This document shows positions 5,042 through 64,000 of a DNA stretch of 64,000 bases, in pieces; position 1 is the first letter of the stretch, and each line of letters opens with the position of its first letter. This DNA is from Anolis carolinensis (Eukaryota). The notes under the pieces are model-generated. The model was not told the origin of the DNA and searched no databases. It saw only the letters and a list, made by a program, of their open reading frames with translations. The position numbers and the translations under genes are program-made. Location of the stretch: contig NC_085844.1 in NCBI RefSeq assembly GCF_035594765.1, positions 89,729,923 through 89,793,922 of the forward strand, written 5' to 3'.

Positions 5042-5360
5042 TAGAGAGGAAGGAGAAAGCTTGTTTTCTGCTGCCCTGGAGACTAGGATGCGGAACAATG
5101 GCTTTAAACTACAGGAAAAGAGATTCCACCTGAACATCAGGAAGAACTTGCTCACTGTGAGGGCTGTTCGGCAGTGGAACTCTCTCCCCCGGACTGTGGT
5201 GGAGGCTCTTTCTTTGGAGGCTTTTAAGCAGAGGCTGGATGGCCATCTGTCGGGGGTGCTTTGAATGCGATTTCCTGCTTCTTAGCAGCGGGTTGGACTG
5301 GATGGCCCATGAGGTCTCTTCCAGCTCTATTATTCTATGATTCTAAGATTCTATGATTCT
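5042..5360 (+). mobile_element. CR1 LINE 3' end
   Basis: RFHLNIRKNLLTVRAVRQWNSLP...FKQRLDGHL and an (ATTCTATG)n tail. Confidence 0.92.
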
Positions 5361-6077: not shown

Positions 6078-6141
6078 ATGAGGAACTGGCTGATCTGTAT
6101 TGTCCTGTTTCTTGTATGGACATGCTGCATTTCCCAAGGTA
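6078..6141 (+). CDS. Gene A exon 1: signal peptide MRNWLICIVLFLVWTCCISQG
   Basis: ATG, hydrophobic core, donor A|gtaagt. Same 64-nt length and similar sequence to gene B exon 1. Confidence 0.8.
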
Positions 6142-9100
6142 GTAAGTTATGAAGAAAAATGGGAATATTCAATTTAAAGAGGAAATTGTTGGGGAATACA
6201 TTATAAAAATGTTGCTTTTATGAGGCTTCTAGTGAAAAGGAATTAATTCAATGTTATATTGAATATTCCAACATTAAGTGAAAACATTACTTTTCAATAA
6301 AGCCAGTGGGATTTAACTGATTCCTTTGAAAATATACATGATATTACACTGTTTAACCTTCCACTCCACCTTTAATAGCAGCACAAGCATTTTACTGACA
6401 GTGCAGTTTATTCCCCTTTCTATTCCCAGCTCTCTTCCAAGACTTCAACTGTTAGGTCAAAACAAAACTCATACAAGCTACTTCACTCAGATTAGCTCCT
6501 TCGAATCCTAGTAGTTACCTGTTAAAATGTGGTCATGAGGAATAAGATTTCTAAATCCCATCTTATCTAGTTGAATAGTCTATATTTTGTCAAAATTTAT
6601 CCTGACAACACTGGGAGAGATGACATGAAACTTTTGTGTCAGAGTGCTTCAAAACGGAGAATTCTCTGCAAACAATGCTGATCTGAAAAACCTATGTTGC
6701 AATGAATAATTTCAGTAGTTTTCTTGAAGAAAGTATTCAAAAACCATACTTTTTTAAAGGCTATTCGCAGTGCAGGAGGCGTTCTATGTATTCTGCTGGA
6801 AAATGTGATTTCAATGCAATAACACTAATTTCTGTGCAGAAAATGCTGTTTTATGGACAAAAAATGCCCTTTTCTATGCAAATCAACCATGTCCATTTTA
6901 GCAAAAGTGAATAGATCTGTGATGGGCATTTAACGAGAAAAGCACACATTTTTAAAGAGTTTTCTGATTTTTTTTTCAGATAATTCTTTCTTTTTTTTAG
7001 TACCAACTGTCTTGTTAGTTAATTGCATCCTCAATCAACTGTAATATTTTGCTCTAATAGTCTTCAGCCATGCTGTTTTGTATATGACCATGCAATGTTT
7101 CAATTCCCCTTTCTATATGTTTTGGTTTAAAAACCATATGCGCTTAAATCTTTATTTATTTATTTATTTATTTACAATATTTCTTTCCCGCTTTTCTCAA
7201 CCCCAAAAGGGACTCAAGGCAGCTTTACATATTGGCAGCTATTCGATGCCTTAAACACAATACAAAGTTAAATGGACATTTAAAATAGAATAATAAGATA
7301 CAATTAAAACAATTAGAGACATTTAAAAACCATGCAATAACAATTAATCACCAGATCCACAAGCCTAATCTGGACTGTTCCTATATTCATAGGCCTGGTC
7401 ACAAAGCCACATTTTTACTCTCTTATGAAAGATCCAGAGGGAGGGGACTAATCTAATATCCCTGGGCAGGGAGTTCCATAGCCGAGGGGCAACCACTGAG
7501 AAGGCCCTGTCTCTCATCCCCACCAATTGCACCTGTGAAGAAGGTAGGACCAAGAGCAGGACCTGCCCGGATGGTCTTAAAGTCTGTGATGGTTCATAAA
7601 AGAAGATACATTCAGTCATGTAAGCTGTGCCAGAACCGTTTAGGGCTTTATAAGCCAAAGACAGCACTTTGAATTATGCTCGGTAGCAGACTAGCAGCTA
7701 GTGGAACTGACACAACAAGCGGGTTGTATGCTCCCTTTACACCGTTCTGGTGAGCAATCTGGCTGCCACCTGTTGAACCATTTGAAGTTTCTGAGCAGTC
7801 TTCAAAGGCAACCCCACATACAGCATGTTGCAGTAATCTATTTGAGATATAGCCAGAGTGTGGACTAAGTATGTATATTGAAATGATTGGACTCTCCCTG
7901 CCATTATCCATATAATAGGGTAGAGAGGTCTAGGTGGCGTCACTATTTATTAGCTGCTATTCATATTTTGGAAGGTAAAAGGAAGAGGGATCGACCAAGG
8001 GAAAGATGGATGGATGGCATCCTTGAAGTGACTGGCTTGACAGTGAAGGAGCTGGAGGTGGCAATGGACAAAAAGGACCTCTGGCGTGGGATGATCCATG
8101 AGGTCATGAAAAGTCGGAAGCAACTGAATGAATAAACAACAACATTCATCTTTTACTAGTTACATTTAATGTCTCCAGGTGTATAACCTAGGATCTTTCC
8201 ATTGTATGAAAAAGAGGTGCAGAAAATGACCGTATATTTTGGCTGTTCTTAAGGGATAAATATTTGCTTTTGCAGACCTTTTCAAACTCATTTATCTATA
8301 TGAGACTGCCTAGATTTCAATGGGGATTACCTGAGATTGTATTATTGAGATGTGTCTTTCAGCTGCATATGGTAAATGATTTCTCCTATACTTTGTCCTT
8401 TTTAAAATCCAAAACGTAACCTACTTTGTGGATAGCCTTTGTATCATTTCTTTTGATTTCCTGTTTAGACATTGTACTACTTTACCATGATGTACAGGAA
8501 TACTATAATATAATTACTCCATAATCAAATATATCATTGTAGATCTTGAAATGCCATGTGGCCGTCCGCCTGCCATTCAACATGGAGATATTTTAGAGCT
8601 TCTTAAAGCAGATTATTCATCAGGTGAAATCGTGACATACAAATGCCAACCATTCTATGTAATAAGAGGATCATCGGAAGTACATTGTGTGAATGGTAAT
8701 TGGACAGAATTGCCAGTATGTATAGGTATGGGGAAAACTTTACTCTTCCACTTTATTATTGTTTTGCAGTCTGCTATAAATGTGAGAGTATGTGGATTTC
8801 ATGGTTTGAGAATGCTGCTAAGTGATGCTCACATTACAGAAAGGATGATTTCCCTAATTCCTTCAGGGAAATACAGTGTGAAGTAATGTTCAGAAATGTT
8901 TCTTCAAAGTGGCACTAGAGCTGCAAAGGGGAATGGGAATTAATGGAGACCATCTCATAACCATTTTTTGTCCAATGTGGAGTCTCTAATGGAATGGCCA
9001 ATTTTGTTAGAATTCTGTCATTTTAGTTTTCAATGGAGCTGATTTACTAAAAAAAAAAAATTTAGATTCCTGAGATGGTACAGTGGCCATTCTATTAAGA

Positions 9101-12100
9101 AGCAGTCACTTTATATGATTTGGGGTTCTCTTAAAGATAGGTATGATTCCTGAGCACAGCTCTATAGAACTCTCTCCTAGGCAAGCTTCATCAAACAGAA
9201 TGACAAAAATACCCAAAGATTTAAAGTGACTTTTCTGCCTACAACTGCCAAAGTGGCTTTCCACATTTTTTGAGGCAGTTAGTGCTTATGAACATTCCAT
9301 GCTTATGCTTGCTCTAAATTCAAGAAAAGCATGTGGATGTATGAAAACATTCTGTAAACTATCTAACCAGAACCATCATCCTGTACATTCATATACAGTA
9401 GAGTCTCACTTATCCAGCATAAACAGGCTAGCAGAACATTGGATAAGCAAAAATGTTGAATAATAAGGAGGGATTAAGGACAAGCCTATTAAACGTCAAA
9501 TTACATTATGATTTTACAAATTAAGCACCAAAACATCATGTTTTATAACATTTTTATGACAGAAAAAGCAGTTCAATACACAGTAACATTATATAGTAAT
9601 TACTATATTTACAAATTTAACACCAAAACATTGCAATGTATTGAAAACATTGACTACAAAAACATTGGCTACTAACAAATTGACTACAAATAAAGATAGA
9701 ATTGAATTTAAATCCATAAAAGGTTCAGTCCTTGCTGCCTAGAGAAACAGCTGTGGATCCAGGCGGGAAGCAGACTGCGTTGGATAATCCAGAACGTTTG
9801 ATAAGCAAATGTTGGATAAGTGAGACTCTACTGTAGCTAAAACAAATATCTTCATATAAAATAGGTCATGCCAGGACTTATGATTCTGACAGCAATTTTG
9901 CAGGCCACAAAGTCCATATTGCTTTTCTGTAACATAATTATGTATTATGTGCAGAACGTTAGTTAAAATTCCTTTCTAGCCATGCCTATGGGTTGCAAAT
10001 ATGTCAATGCAACACATAGGATGGCTGCACAATCTCTAATCAATTTAAGCAAAACAATGAAAACCCAAGTAACTTGCTAGACTAGGAGTATGATTCTTTT
10101 TGGTAGTGCAATAACTACCAGGTTCAATTTCTGGAGAAATTAAGATCCAGCTAGGGAACTGAGTAATTTAACTTGTTGAAAAGCTGCATTTGGTGAATAA
10201 AAGCTGCATTTGGTGAATAAATTTTGAAGAGATTACACTTGATCTCACAAACAGAGTAATTAAGAGACAGGCAGAAATGGAATAATGAGCCTCATGCCCA
10301 TATACAGGGTCTAGTGTGGAAAGTGCATACAAAGTGACTTTAATTGATACTGAACTAGCAATAAATGAACATACACATATATAATGTATGAATTCTAATG
10401 TAAAAAAACTCAAATCAGAAGTAGACTCTCCTTTTCAGCTTCTAGAAACAAATTAGAAAGATGTTGGATAGCAGGACTGGTAAAGAAGGTCTTCCCGAAA
10501 ACTTGTAGAATTACAGCCAAGAAGAGTAAATACAATTGCCTATTACAAAGCAGTCACCACATTCTGGATCAGGCAGTATCATCTTTGTACATTCTGGATC
10601 AGGCAGTATCATCCTCCACATTAGCACTTTTAACGTTTGAGGATTTGATTATTCACAGATAAGATTTAAAATGTTCTGTCCAGGAGTCTCTGTTTCTCGA
10701 GTGCAGGGGTTCCCAACCTTTGGTCCTCCAGTTGTCTTAGGCCCCTTCTACACTGCCATAGAAAATCCAGATTATCTGCTTTGTACTGGGTTATATGGCA
10801 GTGTAGACTCATACAATCCAGTTGAAAGCATGTGGATTATCTGATTTGATAATCTGGGTTATATGGCAGTGTAGAAGAGGCATTAGCCTTAAACTCCCAG
10901 AAATCCCAGCTAGGAATTGTGGGAGCTGAAGTCCAAAATACCAAAGGACCAAAATACCTGGAGGAACCACTGCTGTAGTGTGACTATAGTCAACTTCTTT
11001 CAGCCATACTGGATGATTGGTGGTTTCTAGGATTTTTTAAATACATTATTGCAATTCTGTGGTCAGATTCCAGCAAACGTTGGCCATAGTGTCATGCTGG
11101 AAGACCTGGAAATTGCTAGAAAGTTATCCTCTCAGCTAAAATATTGCAATCTATATATATAAAAGAGTAATGGCATCAGGGCAGTGGACAAAACAACAAA
11201 AGTACAGGCCCCCCAACCTCAAAATTTGACAACACAACCCATCATCCATGGCACTAGGTTGATACAACAAAAAGAAAAGAAAAATAAAGTCCTAATTAGA
11301 GAGAGAGTAATAATTGTTTTTATCCAATTGCTGCCAGTTAGAGTGCTAAGCTCCGCCCACTTGGTTTCCTAGCAACCTACTCAGCTCACGGGACAGGCAC
11401 AGTTAGGCCTCACTTAGGCATTTTCCATAGATTATCTGATTTTAACTGGATTAAATGGCAGTGTAGACTCAAGGCCCTTCCACACAGCTATATTACCCAT
11501 TTATAATCTTATATTATCTGCTTTGAACTGGATTATCTTGAGTCCACACTGCCAGATAATTCACTTCAGTGTGCATTTTATACAGCTGTGTAGAAGGGGC
11601 CTCATATAATCCAGTTCTAAGCAGATATAAGATTATAAATATACAGTAGAGTCTCACTTATCCAACATAAACAGGCCGGCAGAGCGTTGGATAAGTGAAT
11701 ATGTTGGATAATAAGAAGAGATTCAGAAAAAGCCTATTAAACATCAAATTAGGTAATGATTATACAAATTAAGCACCAAATATCATGTTATACAACAAAT
11801 CTGACAGAAAATGTAGTTCGATACTCAGTAATGCTATGTTGTAATTACTGGATTTACAAATTTAGCACCAAAATATCACAATGAATTTAAAACACTGACT
11901 ACAAAACATTGACTACTAAAAGGCAGACTGCGTTGGATAATCCAGAACTTTGGATAAGCAAATGTTGGATAAGTGAGATTCTACTGTAATATGAAATAAT
12001 TACTGTGGTAATCCAGAACAACCCAATTCTGCAATGGAGGACACAATCCAAGCACGCCCAACAGATGGCCACCCAGCCTCTCAATAATAATAAGAATAAG

Positions 12101-12521
12101 AATATCGTACAATCCTAAGGTTAGCAGACACCCCTAAGGATCACCCAGTTCAACTTCCTTATATCATGCAGGAGGACACAATCCAACCACTCCTGACAGA
12201 TGGCCATCCAATATCTGCACAATAATAACACACATCGAATCATAGCATCAGACAGTTAGGAGACACACCTAAAGGCCATCCACTCCAACTCAACTCTGCC
12301 ATGGAGGACACAATCCAAGCACTCCCAACAGATGGCCACCCAACCTCTCAATACTAATACTACTACTAATAATAATAATAACATCATACAATCCTAAGGT
12401 TTGGAGTTACCCCTAAGGGTTATCCAGATCAACTTCCTTCTACCATGCAGGAGGACACAATCCAAGCGCTCCTGACAGATGGCCATCCAGCCTCTACATA
12501 ATAATGATGATGATGAAGATG

Positions 12522-12569
<48 letters not shown>

Positions 12570-14132
12570 GAAGCATAGAATCCAAGAGTTTGGAGAGACT
12601 CCTAGGGGCCATCCAGCCCAACCCTTTCTACTATGCAGCTGGACACAACCCAAGCTTTCACAACACATGGACAACGTATAAATACTATACAATACTAAAG
12701 GTAAAGGTAAAGGTTTTCCCATTTCCATCTCCATTTCTAAGCCGAAGAGCCGGCGTTGTCCGTAGACACCTCTAAGGTCATGTGGCCGGCATGAATGCAT
12801 GGAGCGCCCTTACTTTCCTGCCGGAGCGGTACCTATTAATCTACTCACATTTGCATGTTTTTGAACTGTTAGGTTGGCAGGAGCTGGAGCTAACAGCATC
12901 CACTCACGCCGCTCCCGGGGTTTGAACCAGGGACCTTTTGGTCTCCAGCTCAGTGCTTTAACGCACTTCGCCACCGGGGCTCCTTATACAATACTACACA
13001 GGGACATAGACCCCCTCTATCCTCACCACTTTCACAGTACACAAATAACCAAATGCATACTAAACATAAAGACAACCATACAACAGACATTCAATACTAC
13101 CACTACCTCAACAAGTTCTCACCAACACCACCAGACAACGCCACAGCAACGCGTGGCCGGGCACAGCTAGTTTCTAATAAATTAACAATAATTATTCAAC
13201 TGTAACGGCAAACAACTTTCAAGAACACATAAACTCAAAAAGGGAGGAAACACACACCCAAGAGACAAAAAACAAAATAAGAATAAAAGGGAGGGGATTA
13301 ATGTGTGGGTCGGAAGAGGAAAGAACCCAAAAAAACCCATTAGCCTTCTCCCCTATCATTCACTTTGAAGCAGCATTTTTTGGAGAAACTGGTCTGCAGA
13401 GTTTCAAGAGTTTTTGCATATCTGAATCCCAAATAGCCACAGCCTACTATTTGGCCCGGTCTTCCAGGAAGTTGACTATCAATTCATAGGTGGAGAGGAC
13501 TATAGTTGTGTTGGGGATCTGCTGCATGAGTTGGGCAAAGAGTCCTCAGTAGAAGACCAGGTAACTCTCCTCCCAAAAGATTAGCTGCGCTGTCTGGACA
13601 AACATCTTGTATTTCATGGATATTCCATGCCTCTCATGACAGTGAATATGGAGAGCTGACTGTTTTTACTTATTTTAAACAGTCTTTGCCAGTGTTCTGT
13701 AAATGTAGTGTTTGTTGCATGATAAGCTGTTCATACTTGCTAATAGCATACTTTCATGAAATGGGAACCTCCACTGTTCAATCAATCTATAAAAAATTAT
13801 TTGACTTTCTCCTCCTCTAGATCCTTGTATAGTAACTGTAGAAGAAATGAATCGCAACAACATCCAGCTGAAATGGAGAGAAATCGAAAAGCTATATATG
13901 AAATCCAGGGACATGGTAGAATTTTCCTGCAAAGATGGTTTTGAGCCACATCCATTGTCTTACATGTTCAGGCAACGTTGCATTGAAGGCCATTTGGTAT
14001 ATCCAAACTGCATACCGGTATGTCTTTTTTGCCATGATAGAGTGGTCTGACACCATGTTTTGGGTTAGATGGAATAACTAGAACTTTATGTAACCAATAT
14101 GAGTTTCCTACTTGGCATGTAGGAAAAGGGGT

Positions 14133-14184
<52 letters not shown>

Positions 14185-14805
14185 GCTTTATTTTTGTACC
14201 CCTCCTCAATTTCCCTGAAGGGACTCAGGGTGGCCTACATATGGAAAAGTTCAATGGCTTCCAGATCAACTCATGCTCAAGCAGGGCATTCAGCAACAGA
14301 AGTCTGATAGACATCTGGCAATGGAGGCACTCTGCAGATGTTCAAACTGCAAATTAGTCCCTCTCCACCAACCATCCAGTGACCGTCTGGCTTTCTTTGT
14401 CCCTAAGTCAGGGGTTCTCAAACATTTTCAGTCACAGAGCCCTTTTTGAAGCAAAAGTTTCTTGTTGATACCCAAGAAATGATTATATATTGTATATTAT
14501 GTTATGTTTTATATATAATGTATACATATCAGGCATGGGCAAACGTTTGGACACATTGCATTTTAAAATTTGACAGACAGGTCAGGCCAGTGGCAAATGG
14601 ATAGAGAATGTCTGTGTGAACTATTTGAAAAAATGAACAAATTCCTATGCACACTGCAGATATCTCATTTGTGGTGCAAAAAAGAAAACAAAGGAAAGAA
14701 TGATACAAGATTTAAAATAAAGAACAATTTTAGTGGAATACCCCAGGGGCCATCCAATCTAACTCTAATCAAAGCACCCCTAACAGATGGCCACCCAGTC
14801 TTTGC

Positions 14806-14872
<67 letters not shown>

Positions 14873-15238
14873 GCAACTCCAGACACCATCCAATACAACC
14901 CCAAGGACTCCCCAGAGCACACTTTGAGAACCGCTGTTCTAAAGTTCAAAAGATAGAATAATAGCAATGGGAATAAAATGACTGGTAGCAATTTCAGCAT
15001 ATATCTATAAAGTGTTTAGTAAAAGCATCTCATTATTTTCACTGTTTTATGTTAATTCTTGTGTACAGAATCAATATAATAGGATGATTTGTAAATAAAA
15101 ACAATGCCTTCTATATTTTGTTTCAGATCAACATATGTGTTTAAAAGCAGTAGTGTAATAAATCAATTCATGCAACTTCTTCATCTTCTTCTTCATATTA
15201 TTATATTGTTATTTCTTTGTATTTAACAGGCAACTTAA
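6078..15238 (+). CDS. Gene A: two-SCR factor H-related secreted protein, 150 aa; join(6078-6141,8543-8725,13821-14017,15230-15238)
   Basis: Signal-peptide exon, SCR19-like and SCR20-like exons, then GCA ACT TAA. All introns GT-AG with phases 1,1,0; 453 nt with no internal stop. Confidence 0.82.
7150..7870 (-). mobile_element. L2 LINE 3' fragment
   Basis: DYCNMLYVGLPLK and RAFSVVAPRLWNSLP; (AAAT)n tail. Confidence 0.88.
7968..8145 (+). mobile_element. RTE/BovB LINE 3' end
   Basis: EGKRKRDRPRERWMDGILEVTG; (CAA)n tail. Confidence 0.85.
8543..8725 (+). CDS. Gene A exon 2: sushi domain, FH SCR19-like (CGRPPAIQHGD...YKCQPFY...CVNGNWTELPVCI)
   Basis: Four Cys plus Trp; ttgtag acceptor, G|gtatgg donor; 183 nt, phase 1/1. 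Confidence 0.93.
9396..9833 (+). mobile_element. Tc1/mariner-superfamily MITE
   Basis: TIR CAGTAGAGTCTCACTTATCCA with TA flanks; copies at 11644, 17494 and 56079. Confidence 0.9.
10704..10975. mobile_element. Nested MITEs: hAT-like outer element with a palindromic Harbinger-like insert (~10740-10882)
   Basis: Outer CAGGGGTTCCC...GGAACCACTG; inner GGCCCCTTCTACACTGCCATA...TATGGCAGTGTAGAAGAGGC with TTA flanks. Confidence 0.6.
11644..11986 (+). mobile_element. Tc1/mariner MITE inside the Helitron
   Basis: Same TIRs and TA flanks as 9396-9833. Confidence 0.88.
12699..12985 (-). mobile_element. Sauria SINE inside the Helitron
   Basis: (ACCTTT)n tail and body matching 35791-36123. Confidence 0.85.
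13821..14017 (+). CDS. Gene A exon 3: sushi domain, FH SCR20-like (PCIVTVEEMNRNNIQLKWREIEKLY...YPNCIP)
   Basis: NNIxLxW..KLY..VEFxC signature; ctcctctag acceptor, CCG|gtatgt donor; 197 nt. Confidence 0.93.
14133..14183. repeat. (AAC)n microsatellite; others are (AAT)n ~12522-12569, ~14806-14872, ~25298-25343; (TTTC)n ~19412-19450; (AAAG)n ~35610-35675; (AT)n ~45043-45085
   Basis: Directly visible; these explain the poly-N/I/L/Y/KERK ORFs. Confidence 0.95.
14410..14935. mobile_element. hAT-like composite MITE with internal (AAT)n
   Basis: CAGGGGTTCTCAAAC...TTTGAGAACCGCTG ends; TSD not clean. Confidence 0.5.
15230..15238 (+). CDS. Gene A terminal micro-exon (A-T-stop); AATAAA at 15412 and 15439
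   Basis: tttctttgtatttaacag|GCA ACT TAA, nearly the same context as gene B's tttgtgtttaacag|GCA TAT TGA. Confidence 0.7.
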   Translation, partial: AT

Positions 15239-16716
15239 CGAGAAGAGCAGAACACACAATTTCAGTAATGTATTTGGTCTTTCAGAGTCACTATTGATCA
15301 CATCAAATCAACATGCTTTTGCAAATATGTATATATGGACAGAAACCAGCCAAGGGGATAATCAGATGGAGCAGTGGACGCTGAAACCATAATATAAGTG
15401 GATTACTTTGAAATAAAATAGTGCAATGTTCTATATGAAATAAACATATATCACTCTGTGACCAATAGGATAACAGTAACACTCTCTCCAAGTTCTACTA
15501 TCTATTTCTAAGCTCAGTTCCAAAATAATCGAACAGTCTGGTTCATTCAATAGTTAAAAATCTGCAGCTCTCACTTTCTCTCTCTTTCTAATCATTAAGA
15601 AATTTGACCTTTATTTATGGTTAACTGCCTTCATGTTAACCTCAACTTATGAATGAGAGACATATAAGTCACCCTGTTATCAAGAGCCATACTCAGGTCT
15701 TGCAAACTCACGACCATGGCTTTCTTGATTGAGCCTATCTACCAGTAATGTGTTCCTCCCCTCCTACTGCTTTCTTCCTTAACATGCATTTTTGTTCAAT
15801 TACCCTTTTTTTCTTCCGTTCTCCTTTCCTTCTTTCTTATTGGATATGGAGAAATTGCTGATTATATGGGCACTTTATATATAATTGATAGTTTTTACTT
15901 TCTCTTCAACTTCATTGTAAGACTGTTTGCAGTTAGAACAGCTAGGAAACTGAATCATTGATCTTTGAGTTACAGTACATTGCCTATATATGTGCATTGC
16001 ATTGCTTTGGTTTTGCTAAATGATTATGGAGTTCCAATATTCTCATGTGGGCATCAAAATCTACATTATCATTTCTGTATTCAACATTGTATTTCAATAA
16101 ACCATTACATTTGTTTCAGTTATAATTCTACGTCTGTTTTTGTATGATTTGCTGGGGGGAAAATTCAACCTGAAATTAGCCATAACTATTCACAACTGAC
16201 TCCCAAGCAAAATGGGGAACGGTTGCTATGATTATTGAGTAATCACCTTACCATATTGACAGATTTCCCAGTCGTAGGACACCTCAGCCTCTTTTCAAGC
16301 ATGGAGAGGACATGTCCCAAGGTTGAAAAGAGGCTGAAATGTTTTGAAAGGAGAGAACCCTGAACAAGGGCCAGCAATTGTGTTCAGAGCTTCTACCTCT
16401 TATCACACTTTACTCCCATCTTTACAACTGAAAACCAGATGGGATGGGAACCATCAAAGGTTTCCTGTCCTGTTTCATTGCCCACCCATCAGCAGTCTCT
16501 TATATCCGATGGGGTTTGATGCAGAACAATATGATCCCATGGAAAGAAATGGTTTTAACCTGGATCATTGTCTCTTGTATCCTATGGGGTTTGGAGCAGA
16601 ACCATAGAATCCCATGGAAAGAACTGGTGTCAGTCTCCTTTAATGTAAGGGGCTTTGGGCAGGGCAGGGGGTCTTTTGGTTATTGGATATTGTTGTTTCT
16701 CCTGATTTACAAAAAG

Positions 16717-19411: not shown

Positions 19412-19450
<39 letters not shown>

Positions 19451-24439: not shown

Positions 24440-24503
24440 ATGAATTGCTGGCTGGTCTGTTCCATTGTATTTCTGCTGTCAGGATGTTGTATCTCACAAG
24501 ATG
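24440..24503 (+). CDS. Gene B exon 1: signal peptide MNCWLVCSIVFLLSGCCISQD
   Basis: Hydrophobic leader; donor G|gtaaga; paralogous to gene A exon 1. Confidence 0.82.
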
Positions 24504-25297
24504 GTAAGACATTTTTCCTAAGAGGAAATTCTTACTTCTAGAAATGTTATGTGTGTTTCTATGTGTATGTGTGAACGGAGAGGGGGTGTTACAAAAAATG
24601 TTGCTTAGTTTTCTTCCCTGAAAATTGAAAAAAATCTGGATTATGGAACATTTCTACTTAAAATGTTGAATTTATAATAAAGTAATATTTTATTCAAAAG
24701 AAAAGACAAAGTAGTAAAAATGATAATACATAAAGCATTTTATAATATCTAAAATGGTATAATAACATTCATTCATTCATTCATTTGCAGTAGCTGACAG
24801 CATTGTAATTCCTGGTCTTAATTTTCTTTTCTCGGTTCTTTTTATGGGACTGATTGCTTTAGGCCTGGCACTAGGGAGAACCAGAGGAGGAAAAATATTA
24901 CTTTAATTGTTTTCTAGTTTTTATGATTCCATCTGTTTACATTGTTCAAAACCCATCAAGTTGATTTCCGATCCATAAGGAGAGATTTCCAACTCACCCT
25001 ATTTTCAACAACCCTGCTCCAGGCCATGGCTTCCTTGACTGAGAGTGTAACTTTTGGTATTTTGAGTCAAAATGGGGTGAATCAGCTCCACAGTGGTGGC
25101 ATGATTTGTTATAAGGTGGCCTTGAACTTACTCCAACAAGCCAGAACCCAACTAGCAATGATCACCCAGAAGATCTTTTCATCTGTTTTATTTGGGGTTA
25201 TGATGTTGTGCTTTTGTGTCATGTAATTTCTGGGTTTTTGTAACCATTGTTCACCACTTTGAATCCCACCCATGGAAGAAAAGCAGGGTAGAAATGA

Positions 25298-25347
<50 letters not shown>

Positions 25348-28300
25348 CAACAACAACAACAACTGCCCCAAGACAGTGGAATGACATCAATATTACAAAA
25401 CTAAACGAGTCATCAGAATTCAAGAGAGAACCGAAGACCCATTTCTTCTGACATGTTTACCCAGCCAATTTTAAACCATGATTTTGAAATTTACATTCTA
25501 TCATTATTGTATTTTAATATTTGTATGATGTGTTGTCCAAGGCTTTCATGGCTGGGATCACATTTTAATATGTGCATTTAATAGAGATATATGCATTTTG
25601 TATGCATTTTTGGTGATGTGTTTCAAGTTGTGAAGAGAGGTGGATAACAAGTCATTGTTGTTGAACATCCATACGTAATAACAATTGTACAATTTCTTGT
25701 TCATATTTCTTGGTCCTATTTGAATGTTAAATGTGTGTAATTCAATCTTCACTTCTATATCTTACTCTGAATTGATGTGCTTCAATTTACAGGCAGTCCC
25801 CAAGTTATGAACAAGATAGGTTCTATAGGTTTGTTCTTAAGTTGAATTTGTATGTAAGTCTGAACAGGTACATTTTTTAAATGTAACTCCAGCCAAATAT
25901 ATATGCATATTAGCTGTGGTTAGTATAGGGAAGAGTTGACAGCCCTGTGGTTTTTGTTTTGCTGTCTGTGCCCCTATTCAGAAGATTTCACCTTACTTTC
26001 TGTCCCTGTGGAAATTGGAGTTGGTGATAAAGCTTCAGGGGAGACACCTTTTCCCTATGATAGCTCTTCCAGGAGTTAATTTCCCTTCTGAGCAGTAGAT
26101 TTCTCTTGCTTCCTGTTGTCTCGCCCCAGTTCTTAACTAGAAGCCGTTTGTAAGTTAGATGTTTGTAACTTAGGGACTGCCTGTACTTATGTATTCTCTA
26201 GAGGTGGATTCATGATTAGTGTTGTAGTAGAGCCTGTGGGTAATGTTACAAACAGTAGTATGGGTGCCAGAAGGGGGGAAAGGGTTACTCGGGAGCAGGA
26301 ATCTGATGATGAGCAGCAGAGAAAGAGGATCCGGGACATACTTACAGCACCTACAGATGAGGAGTCATTTGAAGGATTCTCTAGGGATGATAATGTTGCA
26401 GACAGTAGTTGTGGTGCCAGAAGGGGGAAAAGGGTTACCCGGGAGCAGGAATCTGATGATGAGCAGCAGAGAAAGAGGATCCAGGACATAGTTACAGCAC
26501 CTACAGATGAGGAGTTGTTTGAGGGATTCTCTGGGGACGATGGGTCAATGAGTGAAGGAGAAGAAGGAGACACCATGGATTGGACTAAGATAAGAAAAGT
26601 GCAAGGTATTTGTGAGGCGCCATCAACTAGTGATACCTTTATGGGGTTCTCTGGGGGTGAAGACTGGCAATCAGGGGGTCCAACTGATTCTTGGGGGGAT
26701 CTTGACAGGAGATGGAGGAATTGGAGGGAAAGTCAAGGGAATTCATGTGAAGAGCTGGGAGCAGCTGCGAGGGATAGTGATGGGGCAGTGGTCAATTCAT
26801 CTTTGGATGATGGTTTGTAGATAAAAGTGGGTTCAGGGGTGAGGAGTCTTTGCAGAAGGCAAGTTGCTGATGTGCGTTCGTGTGCTGTGTATTGGTAAAG
26901 ATTCTTGTAGACTTGCTGTTGCCTGTTTCGTGTTCGGCATTGGATTTGGATCTGCAGTTTGGACCTGGACCGGTTTGGCTAAAAACGCTGCTTCTGTGGA
27001 CACTGGAGCGACGCTGTTTTGGATTTCTCCTGCTTCAACGCTGGACTTCGGCTGATGACGCTTCTCTTCCCGCGACTCTTTTTGTTAACCATTTGTGTAC
27101 TGTGCCTTTTTGTTTTGCCTCAGAGTGCTTTGTTTGACTTGTTGCTCTTTGCATCCAGTTAATCTGGATTACATTTCTGTTAACCTTTTGGACCAGGTCT
27201 CGTTTGGTTTTTTGAGTTTTGACCAGTGGAACTGCATTTTAGTGTCTCTGCATTCCTTTCTTTTGTTTTAATAAACTCTGTTTTGAAGTCACTTTTAAGT
27301 TTGGCCCTTTAAGGCATCTGTGACTCCAACAATTAGTCAGTATTACTAAACTGAGAATGGTGGGTGTACTATTCATTTCCAACCCCAAGAGAGCATCTTA
27401 GTAATATATATATAACATCCCAATTTTTCTTCTTTAGAAACAATCGTCTGTGTCCTCTTTGACATACCTAATGGGTTTTTTATGGAATCAAGTGGGAGTT
27501 TTAATATTAGTAATACAACAACCTATGGCTGCCAGACTGGCTTCACAACTTTGCAAGGACTACACAGAGGAGAGACAACGTGTCTTCTAGATGGATGGGT
27601 ACCCAAACCAGAATGTATCAGTAAGTGCCTTCAATTAAATGAGTTTTTTTCCCTCAGACCCCATGTAGACTGCCATATAATACAGTTTCAGAATCCAGTT
27701 TAACTGCATTAATTAATTAATTAACTGTTGTTTTTGTGACGTATGCTAGGGAGAGCATTTAATTTCATTGTACAATGACAGTACATTTATTCTATTAAAC
27801 TGGATTATATGGCAGTGTACACTTATATGATCCATTTAAAAGGGTTAAACTGCATTCTCAAATTACATTTTATGTTAGTCTACAAGGGGCCCTGGTAAGT
27901 GAAAGTAAATTAGCATCCTTAAGGACTGTCATCCACAGCATATTGAAATCTGATATTGGATAGCAGTGAAAATCTTACTGATTTAGCAGAGAAACAATTA
28001 TGTGAAATTTTGAAAGTCATTACATGTGAAAACTATTTTCCAAATATTAGCTATGGAACAAATTCTGGCATTTTCTCAGACCCAATAATGAAGACAAGCC
28101 CTAGAAATCATCAAAGAGGTGTATGCCATAAACGTTTTAACTGGTGCTTCACTGTGATGTGCATTAATGACACTAAAACAACATGTTGTAGACATTATTT
28201 ATAAATTCCTCGCATAGTGCACTTGTGCACCATGTGATAAATTCAAATATGTTTCTGAATATTTCACCATGGGTTTAGTTATGGTAAAAGACTTATGTGA

Positions 28301-31300
28301 AGTTCAGTTGACCCTATTGAAGCTGCTCCCCAATTGGATAAAGACTTTTTTTATAGCCCAATTCATTTCTGCCAGTCAGATGCCAATTCTGCTCCTGAAA
28401 TGTGCTGCCTGGCTCATGTCACTCAGTAGGAAACCAGAGAGGCCTTGCATAAGGCTAGGAAAATCCACTTCCCCTGTGTGTCCTCTGTTAACTCTACTAA
28501 CTTGTACTTTTCAGAATATGCCAAAAGCTTTCACAGGCCAAACTCCAAGCACAGAGAATAATTTAAGATATAGTTAAGATACAGCTAGCCAAAGGATGGC
28601 CTTCAAAAACGATGAGCGATTGGCTTCTACAGGAGTAAAGCTCTGGAACTCTGGAAATGTTGTGTTTACTAGACTGTGCTTTGTAGAAACCAACCAACAT
28701 ATTATTTATGTGGGAAAACTTCAGTGGTTAATCATCCTGGCCTAGATCTTGTTCCAGAAATTTATTGCAACCCTTTGCATGGCAGAGGGTTGGGACGAAT
28801 GACTTTTGTGTTCTCTTCCAATTCTATGACTATATTATTTCATGATTCTACGAATCTAATTATTTGCTGGTGAAACCAGTTTCTCCCAAACCAATTCTGA
28901 ATCAACCTAGCAGTCAGGGTTGAGCAGCCCTTAGGGTCTCTGCTAATTATTTAACTATAAGTAAGGTTACATTTAAAAAGAGATAATATAGGATTCTGGC
29001 AGCTGTACAATTTTCAAACTTATTGTAATATTTTTGTATATTTGTATATTTTAAATTCTGTGCTAGTGCTTTTATGTCAAGCCACTTTGAGTCCCCTTTG
29101 AGGAGGTAAAGCAGAGAATAATAATAATAATAATAATAAGAAGAAGAAGAAGAAGAAGAAGTTGCATTAATAAGACCTGTATTTTTGTTTTCTTAGAGAC
29201 GTGCCCAAAGCCAGTGGACGAGAACATTATCTTCAGCACAACTAAACCAGTTGCATTACTGGAGGAAAAACTGATCTTTGAATGTACAGATGGACATGAA
29301 ACCATTAACCAGAAAAGAGGTGGTCAAGCAGTATGCACATTGAAAGGATGGAGCCCAAAGCCTCAGTGCCTATGTAAATTAACACAATATTGTTGTTGTG
29401 TAATAAAATTGAAAGTTTTGATTAATTGTTATAAACAAGTGGTTGCCAAAAGGTGTAGCATTTTCAGATGATGCCTTCATTTTTAGTTAATTTATTGGTA
29501 GCATACTTATTTTCTATATAAATGTTCTTATTTAAATTTCTTTCCTATTCATATTTATATACATAGGCAGGCAGCAATGTGAGGAAGTAGACTTAAGGTG
29601 CAATTACACTGTAGAGTTAATGCTGTTTGATGACATTTTTGCTGTCATGGCCCAGGGTTATGGAATCATGGCAACTGTAGTTTGATGCATCACCGACACT
29701 CTTGGGCAAAGAAGACGAAAGAAGTTATAAAAATACAACTTCTGTTATTCCATAGAATTAATGCAAGGCAGTTAAAGAAGAGTCAAACTGCATCAATTCT
29801 ACAGTGAAATGCACACATCTTATTAACGTATGTAGTTTCTTTTTATTTTACACTAGCTAAACCTGGCCATGCTCTCCTGTGGCTCAGTATGATATGTACT
29901 GAATCTGAATAAAAGTATTGTAGCGAACATAGATTCACCAAGAAAACACATCAATCAATTCAATTCCCTGCCTTTCATTGCTATGTCTATGTGGAATGTA
30001 TAGAAACGAAGGAAAAAGAGTTTCCTCCCCCAAAAAATCATTTTTATTGTAATGCTAGTGAATTGTCTACATTATTGGTGTGTCTTTATTCTGCATATAC
30101 ATTAAGATCAGATGATTTACCAACTCTGGAGCATACAACGTATAATTGCCCATGAGAGATGCATTTATTTTCCAATTTCAAACCACACACTTGCAAAGAT
30201 TGCCCCTGTGTTATATTGATAGTCATCACGAATGCAAGGCATATTGGTAATTGAAGTCATTTGAATTCGAATGTCATCTCATTAAGAATAAGTGGTATTC
30301 CCAAGGCAATCACACCCAACTCCTCCGTGTATGTAGAGTTAGCCATGTTGGGTCTGTGTGCCAAGTTTGGTCCAAATTCGTTGTCGGCTGGGTTTAGTGC
30401 ACTCTAGATATGGGTGAACTACAACTGCCGTAATCAAGGTCAATTCCAACATACTACAGCAGTATGTTCAGCGGGTCATGGGGGTTCTCTATGCCAAGTT
30501 TGGTCCCAATCCATTGTCAATGGGGGCACAATTTCTCTGGATGCAGGTGAACTGTAACTCCTGTAAATCAAAGTCAAGATCCCCCAGATTTTTCCAGTGT
30601 TTTCTGTTAGTTATGGGGAGTCTGTGTGCCTAAGTTTGTCCAGGTCCATCATTTGTGTGGGTCTCTGTGGTCTGTTGAAGTTGGAGCTAATCAGGGGAAG
30701 GTACTGCAAATCCCATCATTCTTGGTCCATCCTCCTATCAGCACCAGGATGTGAAGTGGGTAATGGGGTGTCTGTTTGCCAAATATAGTCCATGTCCATC
30801 ATTCGTGGGGGTTGCTGTGATGTGTGGGAGCCGATTTGGGTGAAGGTACTTCAGATTCCATCATTCATGCTCTGTCCTCCTCTATCTGCACCAGGACTGT
30901 AAAGTGGGTCATGGGGATCTGTGTGCCTGGTTTGGTCCTGTTCTGTCATTGGTGCAAGTCACAGTGGTCTGTGGGAGCTGAAGTTATTGAATATACTGCA
31001 TATCCCATCATCTGTGGTTCTCCCTCTGCCAAACTCATTTTACTATAAAAAACACACATATTGGATGCAACGTTTTGTCAAAATTTCAAGTCAATCAACT
31101 GACTACTTTTCAAGTTCTGCGTGCACAAATATATGCAGGTTGTATTTTTATATATAAAGATATGCATTCACCTATAGAGAGGGGATCATATGCTACACTG
31201 TTTTCAAATCAGATTTATTTTCATTTGCAAACATTGCAGGTGGATGTTAAGCTCCTTTTTCTAAAATACAGTTTACAAATTTAAAATGTCTTGCTGTATC

Positions 31301-34300
31301 TTTTCTTCAGCTATAGAATGTGAAATACCTATTCTGGAGCATGGAAGCATTCATCCAAGAAAAGATCAATATGTGAACAGAGATGTGGTAAAATTTTCCT
31401 GCATCAGAGGATACACAAGAGTTGGTTCTGACTCTGCACAGTGTTATCATTTTGGATGGTCCCCACAACCTCCAACTTGTAAAGGTACACATTTCTTCTT
31501 AGGCTGCTTACAAAATAGCTGTCAATGTATGTGGTATTCTTAAGGTATCCTTCCTGATTTTTGTGACCTGCTTTCCATATTTTACCCAGATTTGTCTTGC
31601 AATATGATTGTCACATATTTGCATTAAAATACTACTTGGAGAATACACACCCTCAGCTATTCCAAGACCCTTCTCATGCAAGATTTGAGAAAAAGATATT
31701 TGGTCTTCCAGATGCTTTTGACTTCATTGCTAAGATGCCATAGACAAAACTCCCTTGTTTTGTACTAAGTTTGGATTTTTTTAAAAAAAATAGTTTTTAT
31801 TGCATTTTTTCAGTTTACAAATAAACAAGAGAGTCTAAGGGGAGCACAAAAGAGAAGGGAATTAGGGAAAGAAAGGTGGGGTGGAAAGGGAGGAGGGGGA
31901 GGGGAGTAGGAGTTGGGTATCCAAATATGAGTGGGGGGAAGGGGTTTGGATATGGGACGGTGAGTTGGGAAGGGTTGAGGGGTGGAGGTCATTAACAGAC
32001 TCCCTGGGAAGGCGTCCCTAATCAAAGAAGGGAAAAAGTGTGGGGGAGTGACTTCCAATCTTCAATCTTCCATTGCGTATCGTCTTCGTTACACTTCTTC
32101 ATTGAGATATTTCTCCAAGTTTGACCAGTCCATTTTTCTAGTCGAATAGCCATTATACTTTTTGGTCCAGTAAGTCAATTTATCCATGTTTTTAATGTCT
32201 AGGAGCCTCTCTAGCCACATATATTTGGTAGGTTTATTTAATCCTTTCCAATTCCTAGCTATTACTAATCTCGCTGCTGTCACTGCTTATGTAAATATTT
32301 TTTCTTTATTCTCTTTTTCTTTAAAGAAATTTGTTTCTCCACTAGTTGGTATATTGAGTAAGCCTAAGGTAAAATTCAGGTTTAAAATCAAATTCCATGT
32401 TTAATAGTTTTTTACATTCCAAATGAACATTTTTCCAGTAGTCGTTAGTTATTTTACAGTTCCACCACATGTGGAAGTACGAGCCCACATGTTCTTTAAA
32501 CCATCAGCATTTATTATCAAGATTACTATACAAGTTTGGAAATTTCATTTGGTTCAAAATACAGCAGCCAGATTGGTTACAGGAACATCTAGGAGTGAGC
32601 ATATTACACCTATCCTAACGTCACTCCATTGGCTGCCAATTAGTTTCTGGGCAAGGTACAAGGTGTTGGTTTTGACCTTTAAAGCCCTTCATGGTTTGGG
32701 TTCAGGTTACCTAAAGGATCTCCTTCTCCCATACAATCCACCCTGAACACTTATGTCCTCTGGAGGGTGGTTACTCCAACCAGCCAGAAGCTGACTGGTG
32801 ACTGTCGCCCAGAAGACCTTTTCATTGGCTGCCCCAAGACTGGAACACCCTTCCAGAAGAGTTCCTACAGGTTAAATGAGCTGTTGGAATTTAAAAAAAC
32901 ATCTAAAGACCAGCAGTTCTACCCAGCCAGTTTTTAAGCAAGTGTCATTTGTTTAATCTTTGTTTTGTGTATTTTAATATGTATTTTATAGAAATACATT
33001 TTAATATATATCTTTTATAGAAATACATTTTCATATCTATATATGTGGGATTTTACAATGTTTATGTATTTTAGTTACTGTATATACTCGAGTATAAGCC
33101 TAGTTTTTCAGTCCTTTTTTAGGACTGAAAAAAAACCTCCTCGGCTTATACTCGGGTGAGGGTCCTGGTGGGCTTATATTTAGGTTGGCTTATACTCAAG
33201 TATGGTATATTTATTTTTTTCTCTATTATTATTGATATTGTTACATTTATTATTTTACTCTATTTTTATTATCATTAATGCATTTATTATTTTACTCTAT
33301 TTATTATTACATTTATTATTTCACTCTATTATAATTAAAAGGATACATAAGCACATTTACATTGAAGATGAGAATAATGATTTAATCAGAGTTGAACAGT
33401 CATATCTTAAATTACAATTTGATGTAAAGATTCAAAAACATTTAGACTACTGATGCCTCAATTAATGTAATTTTATTAGTATCTTGGCTTATACTGGAGT
33501 AAATGTTTCCCAGTTTTTTGTTGTAAAACTAGGTGCCTCGGCTTATATTCGAGTTGGCTTATACTCGGGTATATACTTGTATTCTGTAACCTGCCGTAAG
33601 CCATGAGGAGAGGTGGGTAAGAAATAAAATTATTATTGTTTTTGTTATTGTTATTGTTATTACTCTTGAGTACAAGTGCAGGTTTCATCTTCCATTGTTT
33701 CTATACATTTTTGTTGAGATACAGAAATAGGATAATGTTCCCCTTATCATGCACTTAAATAGCTTCAAACTTAACACAATATTTCTTCTTTCTAGAAAAG
33801 GTTACCCCTTGTCAACAACCACCCAGGATTTCACATGGCAATCTTATTGGTGACCTTCATGAAGAATATCAGCATGGGGAGAAGATGGCTTATGAGTGTG
33901 ATGCCCGTTTTGGAATGGTTGGATCAAGCACTGCAGAATGTGTTGATGGAGAATGGATGTTTTTGCCATCATGCATAGGTAGAGGACCCATAAGTTAGAG
34001 TCATGAGGCCACTGAATCTTATCTATTAACTCTGAAGTTCTGTCTAAACTGGCTAATTAAAAGAGAATAGGGGAAGGAAAACAAACAGAATACATTCTTG
34101 GTAGGATGTACATTTCTTATTGAGTACTGCCAGAGAGCACTTGTTTCCACATAGATGAAGATTTTATGTGATGATTAAATAAAGGCATGAAGGCTTCTGT
34201 TACAAATTTTTGCACTAAAATCTTTTTGCATATTTGATTTTTTGTATCTATTTAAGTTCTGGTATAGAAAGACATTTTAAAAATATATAAAAAAATACAT

Positions 34301-35611
34301 ATGGTAGCGCTCTATGCTTTAAAATATTAAGGCAACGGCAAACCAAATGATGTTTAAACACATCCCAAGGTTCCTACACAACACTTTGTAGTCCATCTAG
34401 AAGATAGCCTAAATTGTTGAAAGAAGTTTGAAGATTTTAAGAAAAAACACATGAGAGTTTACTTTCGATGTGATATGTTCCTAAATATGTTCCTAAACCA
34501 TAAGATTTTTTGCCAGATTTATTCAAAGGGATTGTGATCTGTCCAAGGTTGAACCATTTACTAATTAAATATACATTTTCATGGCCATTTAACTTTCTCG
34601 GGAAACTTGCAAAATCCCCAAATTTTCATAATAAAAAGAAACATCTATATTTTATGATAAATTTGAGTACTCTGATAAACTGGGACTGGCAGTTAATGCT
34701 TGAAAAGATTGCTTAGTCCTTGAAAACAATTGAGAAATGTGCTGGAGAAGAAAAATGTTAGAGCTGGTAAATCCCAGTGAGACATAGACTAAACAGTGTT
34801 GTTGTATGTCTTTCGGGCTGTGTGGCCATGTTCCAGAAGTATTCTCTCCTGACGTTTTGCCCACATCTATGGCAGGCATCCTCAGAGGTTGTGAGGTGTG
34901 GAACATGGCCACACAGTCAGAAAGACATACAACAACCCTGTGATCCCGGCCATGAAAGCCTTCGACAACACATAGACTAAACAGTGTTTGATTAGCTACT
35001 CAGTAAATTTCCAAATCTCATTTAAAAAGACCAGTGTTAGGTTTCAATTATTTGTGACTAATAATAAGGAAAAGTTAATATTTTGATTGACTACCTGTTG
35101 TTTTCAACAGAGGAAGAAAAAACGTGTGGACCACCTCCCAGTATCACAAATGGACATCCTGTCATTGTTGACAACAAAAACACACATTGGCATGGTGAAA
35201 CTGTGGAATATGTTTGTGATCAAACCTTTGTCATTCTTGGGACCAACCCAGCCAGGTGCCTTCGGGGACAATGGGAGGTACCTTCATGTACAGGTAAGTT
35301 TGCTATTTAGAAACCAACTAGGTATCATAAACCAGAGACTTTCAAGCTGACTTCTTCCTGCATTTGAATCCTTAGATGGTGCAGCAAAATGTAGACGTCC
35401 AAAGAATGCAAAATTTGTACCATATGCTCCTCTTACAAAGATGTTTGACAATGGTAGAGCTGTAAACTATATGTGTGGTTCCAGTCTTCATACAACAAAA
35501 TGTAATCATGGAAAATGGTCACCGGAACCAGAATGCAAAGGTATGGTTTTGTATGTTCTATCCAAGTCGCTGGTTTCTAAAGCACAGTGAGAGATGGGGC
35601 CACCAGGAGGA

Positions 35612-35675
<64 letters not shown>

Positions 35676-41600: not shown

Positions 41601-41692
41601 TAGTATGTATGAGACCCAGAGCCACCCCTGATGAACAAAATGAATTAAAATACTCACCTCTACGTTTTTATAAAAATGTTTGTTTTTTGTAT

Positions 41693-41742
<50 letters not shown>

Positions 41743-44700: not shown

Positions 44701-44833
44701 GATAATAAATCATAGGTGCTTTTTTAAATCCATATTTATGACCCAATTTACAACCCTCCAGAGCCACCCCTGTTGAACACAAATGAATTAAAACACTCAC
44801 CTCTGAGTTTTTGTAAAAATGTTTGTTTTTGTA

Positions 44834-44881
<48 letters not shown>

Positions 44882-45039
44882 GCCTCCCTCTCCCTCCTTG
44901 TGCTCTTGCAACAGGGGCAGGACTGCTCTCTCCCCTCAACTCTTTATCAGCCTCCCTTTCTCAGTGATCCATTAGGCTGGTGGAGGATGAGGCCCAGAGA
45001 GGGCTGCAAGCAGGCTTTACAATTATATGACCTGTCCCC

Positions 45040-45086
<47 letters not shown>

Positions 45087-45199: not shown

Positions 45200-45564
45200 G
45201 TGAATCTGAAGAAGTATACAGCAGCTGCTTATAAACAACACAATTTTCCAAACATCATTTTTGTTTTTTGTTTTTTCAAAAAGCCATATTAATTGATTTT
45301 TTAGTTATATTTTCAATAGGTAATAGATAGATGTTAAAGAGGTTGGTGGCTCTGTTGCTTTGGGTTCATTAATCCATGCTGAGCTTTTACAAGAACAAGA
45401 TTAGTCTTGTGCATTTGTATGGAATTGTCTGTTTCTATTTGTACTATTTGTATGGCCCCATTTCCATTTCTGTCTACTATGAATGGAAATGGGCACCTAT
45501 TCAAATGGGCTTTTCCATCCAAGGTTTGAAAAAAACAAAGATTTTTCTGGCCTTGGGCGACAAA

Positions 45565-50455: not shown

Positions 50456-50909
50456 TTTTGCAGCAGTAAAGAAAATCACTTTTGCAAATAGGTGCTTTTT
50501 ATTTTATTTTTCATAATGCATAAACATCTTACAAACAAAATGTAACTACTGAAATTACATACAGCTACTGTGTTCTTAACCTGTTGAACCTCATTCCCAG
50601 TTCACATGCACAGTGCATGCATTTTCAGCTTCAGGTGATTTTTTCTCCTTTCAATAGGCTTGCTTGTTTGGAAATTGAATTACATTTATAACTTCACCTT
50701 TTACAAATATTGGAGTTTTGTTTTCTAAAAAATACATGTTAACTAAAAGGTTCACAGTTCAGTAAAAGTATATGTGTAATATATAATCTTTGAAAAATGT
50801 ATTTGCAATTATATAGAGTAATTTTAAGCCATTGAAGATAATTGAACTATATTTTCTGTTGATGACATGCTCATTAAAAATCTTGTCCACTTCTCCCCAT
50901 TCCTTATAT

Positions 50910-50915
50910 TTATAT
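50910..50915 (-). CDS. Gene C terminal micro-exon (I-stop); 3'UTR to ~50460 with AATAAA near 50498-50508
   Basis: ctttgtatttttcag|ATA TAA; paralogous to the gene 0 terminal exon. Confidence 0.65.
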   Translation of the reverse strand: M

Positions 50916-63401: not shown

Positions 63402-64000
63402 CTAAATGGGGAGACAATACAAAAAAGAAAGACCTTTATTAATGTTTTGTAAAAACAAAAACTCACTCAGTACTTTTATTATAATGGAGAAAAATAAAGA
63501 TTCCAAGGCTTTTTAGCAAAAAAAAAAATGTCTACAATGCCTGAATGTCAATATGTAGCAGTGCAAAGAGGATTCCACTGAACTGATTCTACCATTCTTT
63601 GGTGCACATACATTTGAAGTTTGGAGTATGAATAGTTGCAGATTGTGGATGAGGAGAGTATGAATGTGCTTTATGTCCCATTTAAATACATAAAAATTGC
63701 TTGGAAGGGGCTACTGTTAAAAGGACATCACATGAAAGAAAAATAGAAACTTTTGGTCTGAATTTGTATGTTGACTGCTATGTGAACTATGGATTGATTA
63801 TTATGGTCATTAAGCATCTAGAGCGCTTCCGGACAGTGCCAACATCCATGCCAAAGTGGGTTTAAAAAACCCAATTTGGTGCTGATTCCCATCCCCACCC
63901 CCAACAAAAACGGACTTTCTGGAAAGGGGGTGTCTAGATGCCATCTTGACAACTACTAGGATAGCATCTAGCCACCCTGAATCACCAAAAAACAAGCCTT

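Follow-up and report, generated by a model that had tools for sequence, protein, structure and literature searches.

Can the last two complement control protein (CCP, or sushi) domains of complement factor H (FH), CCP19 and CCP20, be encoded by a gene of their own? The question is raised by a stretch of 64,000 nucleotides from Anolis carolinensis (NCBI RefSeq assembly GCF_035594765.1, contig NC_085844.1, positions 89,729,923 to 89,793,922 of the forward strand), which is called the window here and in which positions are counted from the first letter. The window has a GC content of 38% and no N, and it contains three FH-family genes, A and B on the forward strand and C on the reverse strand. 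Gene A (6078-15238, +) consists of four exons encoding a signal peptide, two CCP domains and a two-codon end, and the original prediction, made from the DNA alone, had described it as a miniature FH-related (FHR) gene. We conclude that gene A is most likely a transcribed and spliced member of the anole FH/FHR cluster, whose secreted product would have about 129 residues after removal of the signal peptide. It seems highly probable to us that gene A is a genuine gene for a secreted FHR with two CCPs, while a role of the product as a competitor of FH is a tentative proposal that falls somewhat short of an even chance. We regard the complete reading, a spliced cluster member encoding a two-CCP homologue of FH19-20 that acts as an FHR-type competitor, as evenly balanced.

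The coding part of exon 1 (6078..6138, +) starts with the ATG at 6078 and encodes, as an exon of its own, a 20-residue hydrophobic N-terminus predicted by similarity to be a signal peptide, and its final base opens the next codon (phase 1). Two tandem donors lie 3 nt apart at its end, both in phase (6139..6143, +): the GT at 6139, which is used in the sequence contigs described below, and GTAAGT at 6142, whose position matches that of the gene B donor. Exon 2 (8543..8725, +, phase 1-1) encodes a CCP domain in the FH CCP19 position with four Cys, the conserved Trp and an N-W-T sequon. Exon 3 (13821..14017, +, phase 1-0) is CCP20-like and ends ...CIP before a GTATGT donor, and the donor of the CCP20 exon is kept in genes A, B and C. 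The last exon (15230..15445, +) contains two codons (A, T), the stop codon at 15236-15238, and a 3' untranslated region with AATAAA at 15412 and 15439. All splice sites are canonical and all junctions are in phase, so that the four exons stand where they had been placed. The predicted product of 150 amino acids from a donor at 6141/6142 needs correction, as the contigs use 6138|6139, 3 nt upstream, giving a protein of 149 amino acids that reads ...CISQ-D-LEMPC across the exon 1/2 junction. Both internal exons are sushi exons and nothing else is coding, making the product CCP-only.

In human CFH, the stop codon is carried in the CCP20 exon. Genes A, B and C, and a Podarcis muralis gene for a 151-residue protein, apparently close with an exon of their own that has just one or two codons, each time after the acceptor motif CTTTGTATTTAACAG or a close variant (15215-15229 in gene A, 45177-45190 (+) in gene B, 50916-50929 (-) in gene C and 13964-13978 of the Podarcis locus L001). 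Gene A and the Podarcis gene are identical in the 15 bases leading into the last exon (15215-15229 in gene A, including the AG acceptor). In gene C, the motif would place an 'I' at the very end, in keeping with A. carolinensis models, which end ...CIRI. The last exon of one or two codons appears to be a family trait in these lizards, and this supports the placement of exon 4 of gene A.

In order to examine splicing, Logan contigs from runs X4 and X8, which belong to two studies and are labelled RNA by guess, were compared with positions 5950-11949 only. Such contigs give no expression levels, transcript starts or ends. In each of X4 and X8, a contig joins 6138 to 8543 with GT..AG ends and the donor AAG|GTAGTA. 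The expected junction of 6141 with 8543 was therefore found in one respect, exon 1 being joined directly to exon 2 in both runs, and not in the other, the donor being 6138; among the joints listed, none started from 6141. In addition, unitig breaks, one an end at 8570 and one a start at 8696, sit where k=31 branching at precisely the predicted exon 2 acceptor and donor would put them. The junctions 8725/13821 and 14017/15230 are supported indirectly by these unitig breaks, the Anolis sagrei gene model, the conserved CCP20 donors and the acceptor shared with Podarcis.

Two other joints start from the same exon 1 end. An alternative exon derived from a transposable element (TE) lies in intron 1 (7975..8135, +) and is joined from 6138 (joint 6135 to 7972, cut +3, GT..AG, depth 11.4 and 12.3). 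Its frame reads ...GRPRERWMDGILEVTGL... up to the in-frame stop at 8133-8135, the product being the signal peptide plus about 53 unrelated residues, and no Pfam match was found for the exon; owing to the stop, this isoform is non-productive. In a third form, the exon 1 end is joined to a CCP exon starting G-EITCEPPNIA, for which there was no match in the window. We considered that exon 1 serves a longer gene through this exon and rejected it, because A. carolinensis XP_008118185.1 starts with a near-identical signal peptide followed by exactly GEITCEPPNIA, and the exon thus belongs to a paralogue with a near-identical first exon. Exon 1 of gene A is 95% identical to the N-terminus (residues 1-21) of XP_008118185.1, and therefore the read depth over exon 1 is not assignable to gene A. 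The CCP exons of gene A are about 50% identical to any paralogue, compared with 95% for the signal-peptide exon; the 5' end of the gene suggests a recent gene conversion or a patchwork origin. Over 5950-11949, runs X21 and X24 gave repeat-derived contigs only. X4 and X8 have no contigs over 6150-7149, the first kilobase of intron 1, and over the rest of introns 1 and 2 (7181-11150) the depth is close to that of the joints, a pattern that fits a repeat filter, unspliced RNA or DNA carry-over, which are indistinguishable here.

We then searched for further sushi exons using a local sushi hidden Markov model (HMM) built from the 15 CCP exons of the window, together with tblastn. No further sushi-like open reading frame (ORF) was found in 1-8508, 8884-13804 or 14048-24000 (all matches E>1), badly decayed exons being invisible to both scans. 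Over 1-24000, this agrees with the earlier claim that introns 1 and 2 of gene A hold no other sushi exon, and the 6 kb upstream hold none either. The earlier claim that regulatory and dimerisation domains are lacking was likewise upheld, since neither homologues of the FH regulatory CCP1-4 nor the N-terminal dimerisation module of FHR-1, -2 and -5 are present: exon 1 is joined straight to the CCP19-like exon, and the mature product starts at that domain. Genes B and C, which lie alongside, bear the same C-terminal module, placing gene A in an FH/FHR cluster.

For the identification of the two domains, exons were searched singly, and the A. sagrei orthologue XP_060630525.1 served as a proxy in the whole-protein steps (homologues, structure and fold). 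Exon 2 matched Pfam Sushi (E 1.7e-10) and exon 3 matched Sushi_2 at 22.4 bits (cut-off 22.1), and the two exons align gaplessly to human FH CCP19 and CCP20. In single-domain comparisons with the PDB, exon 3 scored best against CCP4 of FHR-2 (58 bits), compared with about 54 bits against FH CCP20. Exon 2 scored 37.5-39.9 bits against FH CCP19, compared with 50.4 bits against CCP11 and 40.9-43.3 bits against CCP18. As exon 2 alone scores equally well or better against CCP11 and CCP18, its CCP19 label rests on its position and on the two-domain fold. The AlphaFold2 model of the A. sagrei orthologue reached a pLDDT of 89.3 (30-row alignment), and the top 35 PDB matches of this model in Foldseek were all FH19-20 or FHR C-terminal pairs, with TM values up to 0.94 and a root mean square deviation of 1.1-2.4 Å over about 122 residues, while other CCP pairs gave TM values of about 0.4. 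Taken as a pair, the module of gene A is, on this predicted fold, the FH CCP19-20 module, in agreement with the original assignment.

Another candidate for exon 3 was F13B, an FH-cluster neighbour in mammals whose sushi domains 8 and 10 are CCP20-like, as exon 3 is. We rejected it, since its top whole-chain score of 68.5 bits comes from two domains (37 and 29 bits), and its fold gave a TM value of 0.35. Its single-domain scores were under those of FHR-2 and FH CCP20, and unlike gene A, F13B has ten sushi domains and a different function.

The ligand-contact residues follow the established numbering of human FH, which was checked against the alignments. In gene A, D1119, Q1139, Y1142, W1157, W1183, K1188, L1189, Y1190, V1197, E1198 and R1215 are kept; D1119, Q1139, Y1142, W1157, W1183, V1197 and R1215 had already been named as retained, and the gapless alignment to human FH CCP19 and CCP20 confirms each of them. 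Q1139 and Y1142 sit in the C3d interface, which the D1119G/Q1139A mutant probes (PMC5096715). The changes in gene A are N1117H, R1182K, T1184R, K1186I, S1191M, R1203D, R1206E, R1210L, H1212Y and W1219I. Most basic residues of the heparin patch are gone from its CCP20, where Lys at 1182 and Arg at 1215 remain, and the net charge of the domain is 0.

The original prediction had also carried over the recognition of sialic acid and glycosaminoglycans (GAG) from human FH. This part was not borne out: the residue equivalent to S1191 is Met in both anoles, R1203, R1206, R1210 and K1186 are replaced by D, E, L and I, the CCP20 charge is neutral, and the combination of Ser1191 with basic residues that makes up the FH-type sialic acid/polyanion site was not found in gene A. 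The S1191L change abolishes sialic-acid binding in human FH and FHR-1 (PMC7959842). At position 1191, Ser is usual, as in Zootoca CFH, in models P0113 and P0099 of A. carolinensis, and in those bird and turtle proteins that were compared, while gene A has Met, gene B Ile and gene C Phe. Since sauropsid CCP20 domains are near neutral in general, that of Zootoca CFH included, the human sialic acid/polyanion site may not carry over to these animals.

Based on these observations, we propose that the gene A product would bind surface-fixed C3b, iC3b or C3d through its CCP19 face. Having no CCP1-4, it would be unable to regulate complement, and it may occupy the docking site of the FH C-terminus as a monomeric FHR-type competitor, or deregulator, on opsonised surfaces, presumably without the avidity that dimerisation confers. 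A monomer is expected, as there are neither N-terminal domains nor a free cysteine. Because of the Met at the S1191 position and the neutral CCP20, the product is probably not reading host sialic acid or GAG as human FH does, and in its logic it is probably nearer to FHR-1, with Leu at 1191, than to the FH C-terminus. FHRs are known to compete with FH in human and mouse (PMC5610720). Monomeric FH18-20 binds C3b with low micromolar affinity, and with constructs whose sialic-acid binding is weak or absent, complement activity on host-like cells rose just slightly (PMC7959842).

When gene A is compared with known systems, human FHR-2 and FHR-1 are similar to it in being secreted, CCP-only products of FH-cluster genes, without FH CCP1-4 and with their last two CCPs homologous to FH CCP19-20. 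FHR-2 also provides both the best single-domain match of exon 3 noted above and, in its complex with C3d (9n1z), the best fold match named (TM 0.93), and the residue at the S1191 position is bulky and hydrophobic in FHR-1, as in gene A. However, FHR-2 has four CCPs and FHR-1 five, both with the CCP1-2 dimerisation module at the N-terminus, and gene A has neither these additional domains nor this module; sequence identity is about 40-45%, and gene A is the orthologue of no human FHR. Recombinant FH19-20 and FH18-20, which have been used to displace FH from C3b-coated or host surfaces (PMC7959842), have the same domain content and predicted fold as gene A, but they keep S1191 and the basic CCP20 patch and bind sialic acid and heparin, whereas in gene A position 1191 is Met and positions 1203, 1206 and 1210 are D, E and L. 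Unlike these laboratory fragments, gene A occurs naturally and encodes a signal peptide of its own.

The proposed orthologue search in squamates gave an orthologue in A. sagrei. When exon 3 was searched with phmmer against 1.84 billion cluster representatives, 294 matches were obtained, and the closest relative of gene A is A. sagrei XP_060630525.1, annotated as 'complement factor H-related protein 2', which has 150 amino acids, the same architecture and the end ...CIPET. It is 88% identical to gene A in exon 2 and 89% in exon 3, and domain trees (FastTree, 55 and 62 residues) pair it with gene A with support of 0.83 and 0.98. Deeper nodes conflict with each other, the Podarcis CCP20 grouping with gene B and the gene A CCP20 with a marsupial F13B-like protein (support 0.57), and therefore we claim no squamate-wide orthology. 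The two anoles split within the past 50 million years (PMC9596491). In both of them the ORF is intact and all 8 Cys and the Trp residues are kept; the intact ORFs, splice sites, Cys and Trp argue for constraint, as judged from the sequences.

Models with a signal peptide and two CCPs also exist in Podarcis muralis (XP_077784472.1) and P. lilfordi, with 151 and 147 amino acids, and in Candoia aspera, with 168 and 170 amino acids, where the RefSeq model XP_063154463.1 has the domain layout of gene A. The P. muralis gene (L001) has the same four-exon plan. As with genes A and B, a longer sushi gene in the same orientation comes next, here 7 kb downstream, and no gene was called within 10 kb upstream. 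Thus XP_060630525.1, XP_077784472.1 and XP_063154463.1 all share with gene A a signal peptide followed by a CCP19-like and a CCP20-like domain, within 147-170 amino acids, and they are automatic predictions with no published description. As RefSeq already predicts this architecture in A. sagrei, P. muralis and C. aspera, the novelty of gene A is less than the original prediction had implied. In other squamates, the RefSeq model of Varanus komodoensis (P0007) shows a signal peptide followed by CCP19-20-20-20, and that of Erythrolamprus reginae (P0038) a signal peptide followed by CCP 19-20-19-20; the terminal CCP module appears to have been multiplied in tandem in some squamates.

Here, we need to consider several observations that weigh against a functional two-CCP competitor. 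Of the three junctions, just the first has read support, from contigs over 5950-11949, and the RNA label of X4 and X8 is itself a guess. Intron contigs have a depth of 16-38, compared with 16-24 for the joint contigs, and therefore spliced mRNA is not clearly dominant; the non-productive TE isoform points in the same direction. The exon 1 contig extends at least 637 nt upstream of 5950. No gene A protein was found in a collection of 5.8 billion proteins, where the A. sagrei query matched itself only. The ratio of non-synonymous to synonymous rates (dN/dS) between P. muralis and P. lilfordi was 0.59, which rests on too few changes (4 non-synonymous and 2 synonymous; non-coding divergence 0.039). 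With regard to function, a monomer with Met at 1191 may be a weak competitor, and C3b/C3d binding is predicted from residues.

Some of these observations would suit a gene that is a remnant, that is, a partial FH-type duplicate which kept the exons for the signal peptide, CCP19 and CCP20 and is now poorly expressed, poorly spliced, drifting and functionless. Under this explanation, one would understand intron coverage equal to the depth of the splice joints, the TE exon that brings a stop, an ancestral donor sequence altered so that tandem GTs are left, and a Podarcis dN/dS that, with 6 changes, is indistinguishable from 1, as well as the absence of the protein from the protein collection; a patchwork locus would also be expected to show the contrast in paralogue identity between the signal-peptide exon (95%) and the CCP exons (about 50%). 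However, the ORF, splice sites and structural residues have stayed intact in two anoles separated for up to 50 million years, the four-exon plan is intact in Podarcis and the domain layout recurs in the Candoia model, the C3d-contact residues are kept, and the A. sagrei orthologue has a confident predicted fold. We consider a remnant unlikely for these reasons. A very improbable account, in our view, is that the CCP19-20 exons serve chiefly as alternative 3' exons in a larger FH-type transcript beginning upstream of the window, or exon 1 is mainly the first exon of another gene, so that the two-CCP product is a minor by-product. The window starts just 6 kb upstream of gene A and the exon 1 contig runs past 5950, exon 1 is far deeper than exon 2, and a contig links the exon 1 end to the G-EITCEPPNIA exon outside the window, all of which would fit such sharing. 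But XP_008118185.1 explains the G-EITCEPPNIA exon, which has no match in the 58 kb downstream, the 6138/8543 joint occurs in two studies, RefSeq models of 150 (A. sagrei) and 151 amino acids (P. muralis) exist, and in Podarcis the 10 kb upstream of the mini gene are free of called genes.

A different function was also weighed, in which microbial FH-binding proteins, such as those of the Borrelia OspE type, capture the gene A product and the microbe is left without complement protection. FH19-20 docks to Borrelia OspE and FhbA in solved complexes, which are among our fold matches (4j38, 5nbq and 6zh1), and lizard serum kills several Borrelia genospecies, with host complement shaping host range (PMC5644625). 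Two-CCP or CCP19-20-repeat models recur across several squamate lineages, gene births and deaths in the family follow patterns typical of host-pathogen conflict, and the protein changes rather quickly, about 12% of its amino acids having diverged in less than 50 million years. Binding of the gene A product by a reptile pathogen is hypothetical, and a decoy is compatible with a competitor rather than exclusive of it. We rate the decoy as quite unlikely and prefer the reading of gene A as a two-CCP FHR. A broader proposal, which we regard as rather unlikely, would combine both functions: squamates may maintain minimal CCP19-20-only FHR monomers, in some lineages as tandem repeats, as dedicated decoys or competitors that occupy C3d/TED or microbial FH-binding proteins without regulation, and thereby tune complement killing of host-adapted pathogens, gene A being the Anolis member.

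The roles of FHRs are disputed, and work on them has been done mostly in human and mouse, in which no FHR has fewer than four CCPs and a number of FHRs are dimeric. A natural monomeric protein with CCP19-20 only would separate the occupancy of C3d/TED from the avidity of dimerisation, so that gene A, if the reading is true, would be a natural experiment on FHR deregulation without dimerisation, and would show that the C-terminal module of FH is deployable alone in vivo. We found no description of an FHR smaller than the gene A product, the smallest human FHR being FHR-2 with four CCPs, and our literature search found no paper on reptile FHRs. A review-like introduction names FHRs in no animals but fish, rodents and humans (PMC5610720), and a survey counts three Cfh copies in anole (PMC7768046). 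The residues at 1191 in genes A (Met), B (Ile) and C (Phe) parallel the difference between human FH (Ser) and FHR-1 (Leu), which hints at a convergent loss of self-recognition in FHR-type paralogues.

The two neighbouring genes have longer CCP arrays. Gene B (24440..45200, +) opens with its signal-peptide exon (24440-24499). Its CCP exons number at least nine within 27449-40033, and after them come a CCP20-like exon (41986-42174) and, just past 45190, a candidate last exon. In its C-terminal module (39869-42174, +), Leu is found at the Q1139 equivalent and at W1183, and Ile and Ala at 1191 and 1197, the last two resembling Leu and Ala of human FHR-1; the FH-type contacts with C3d and sialic acid may have been lost in this gene, as far as the residues tell. 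A 202-amino-acid ORF in its first intron (26212-26820, +), earlier labelled a solo LTR ORF, had no Pfam match. Directly 3' of the CCP20-like exon, within the presumed last intron, lies a 581-amino-acid ORF with a reverse-transcriptase domain (42887-44632, -; RVT_1, E 8.7e-14).

Gene C (50900..64000, -), whose 5' end is beyond the window, shows CCP exons (63393-63229, 61968-61804 and 56648-56484), then a CCP20-like exon (54073-53882) and, near 50915, a candidate last exon. The three CCP exons are 98% identical to A. carolinensis XP_008118185.1 ('CFHR1 isoform X3'), while the CCP20 exon (53882-54073, -) has just 76% identity to A. carolinensis models, with Phe at the 1191 equivalent where these models have Ser. 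This divergence could reflect an allele, a paralogue or a gene conversion within the CCP20 exon.

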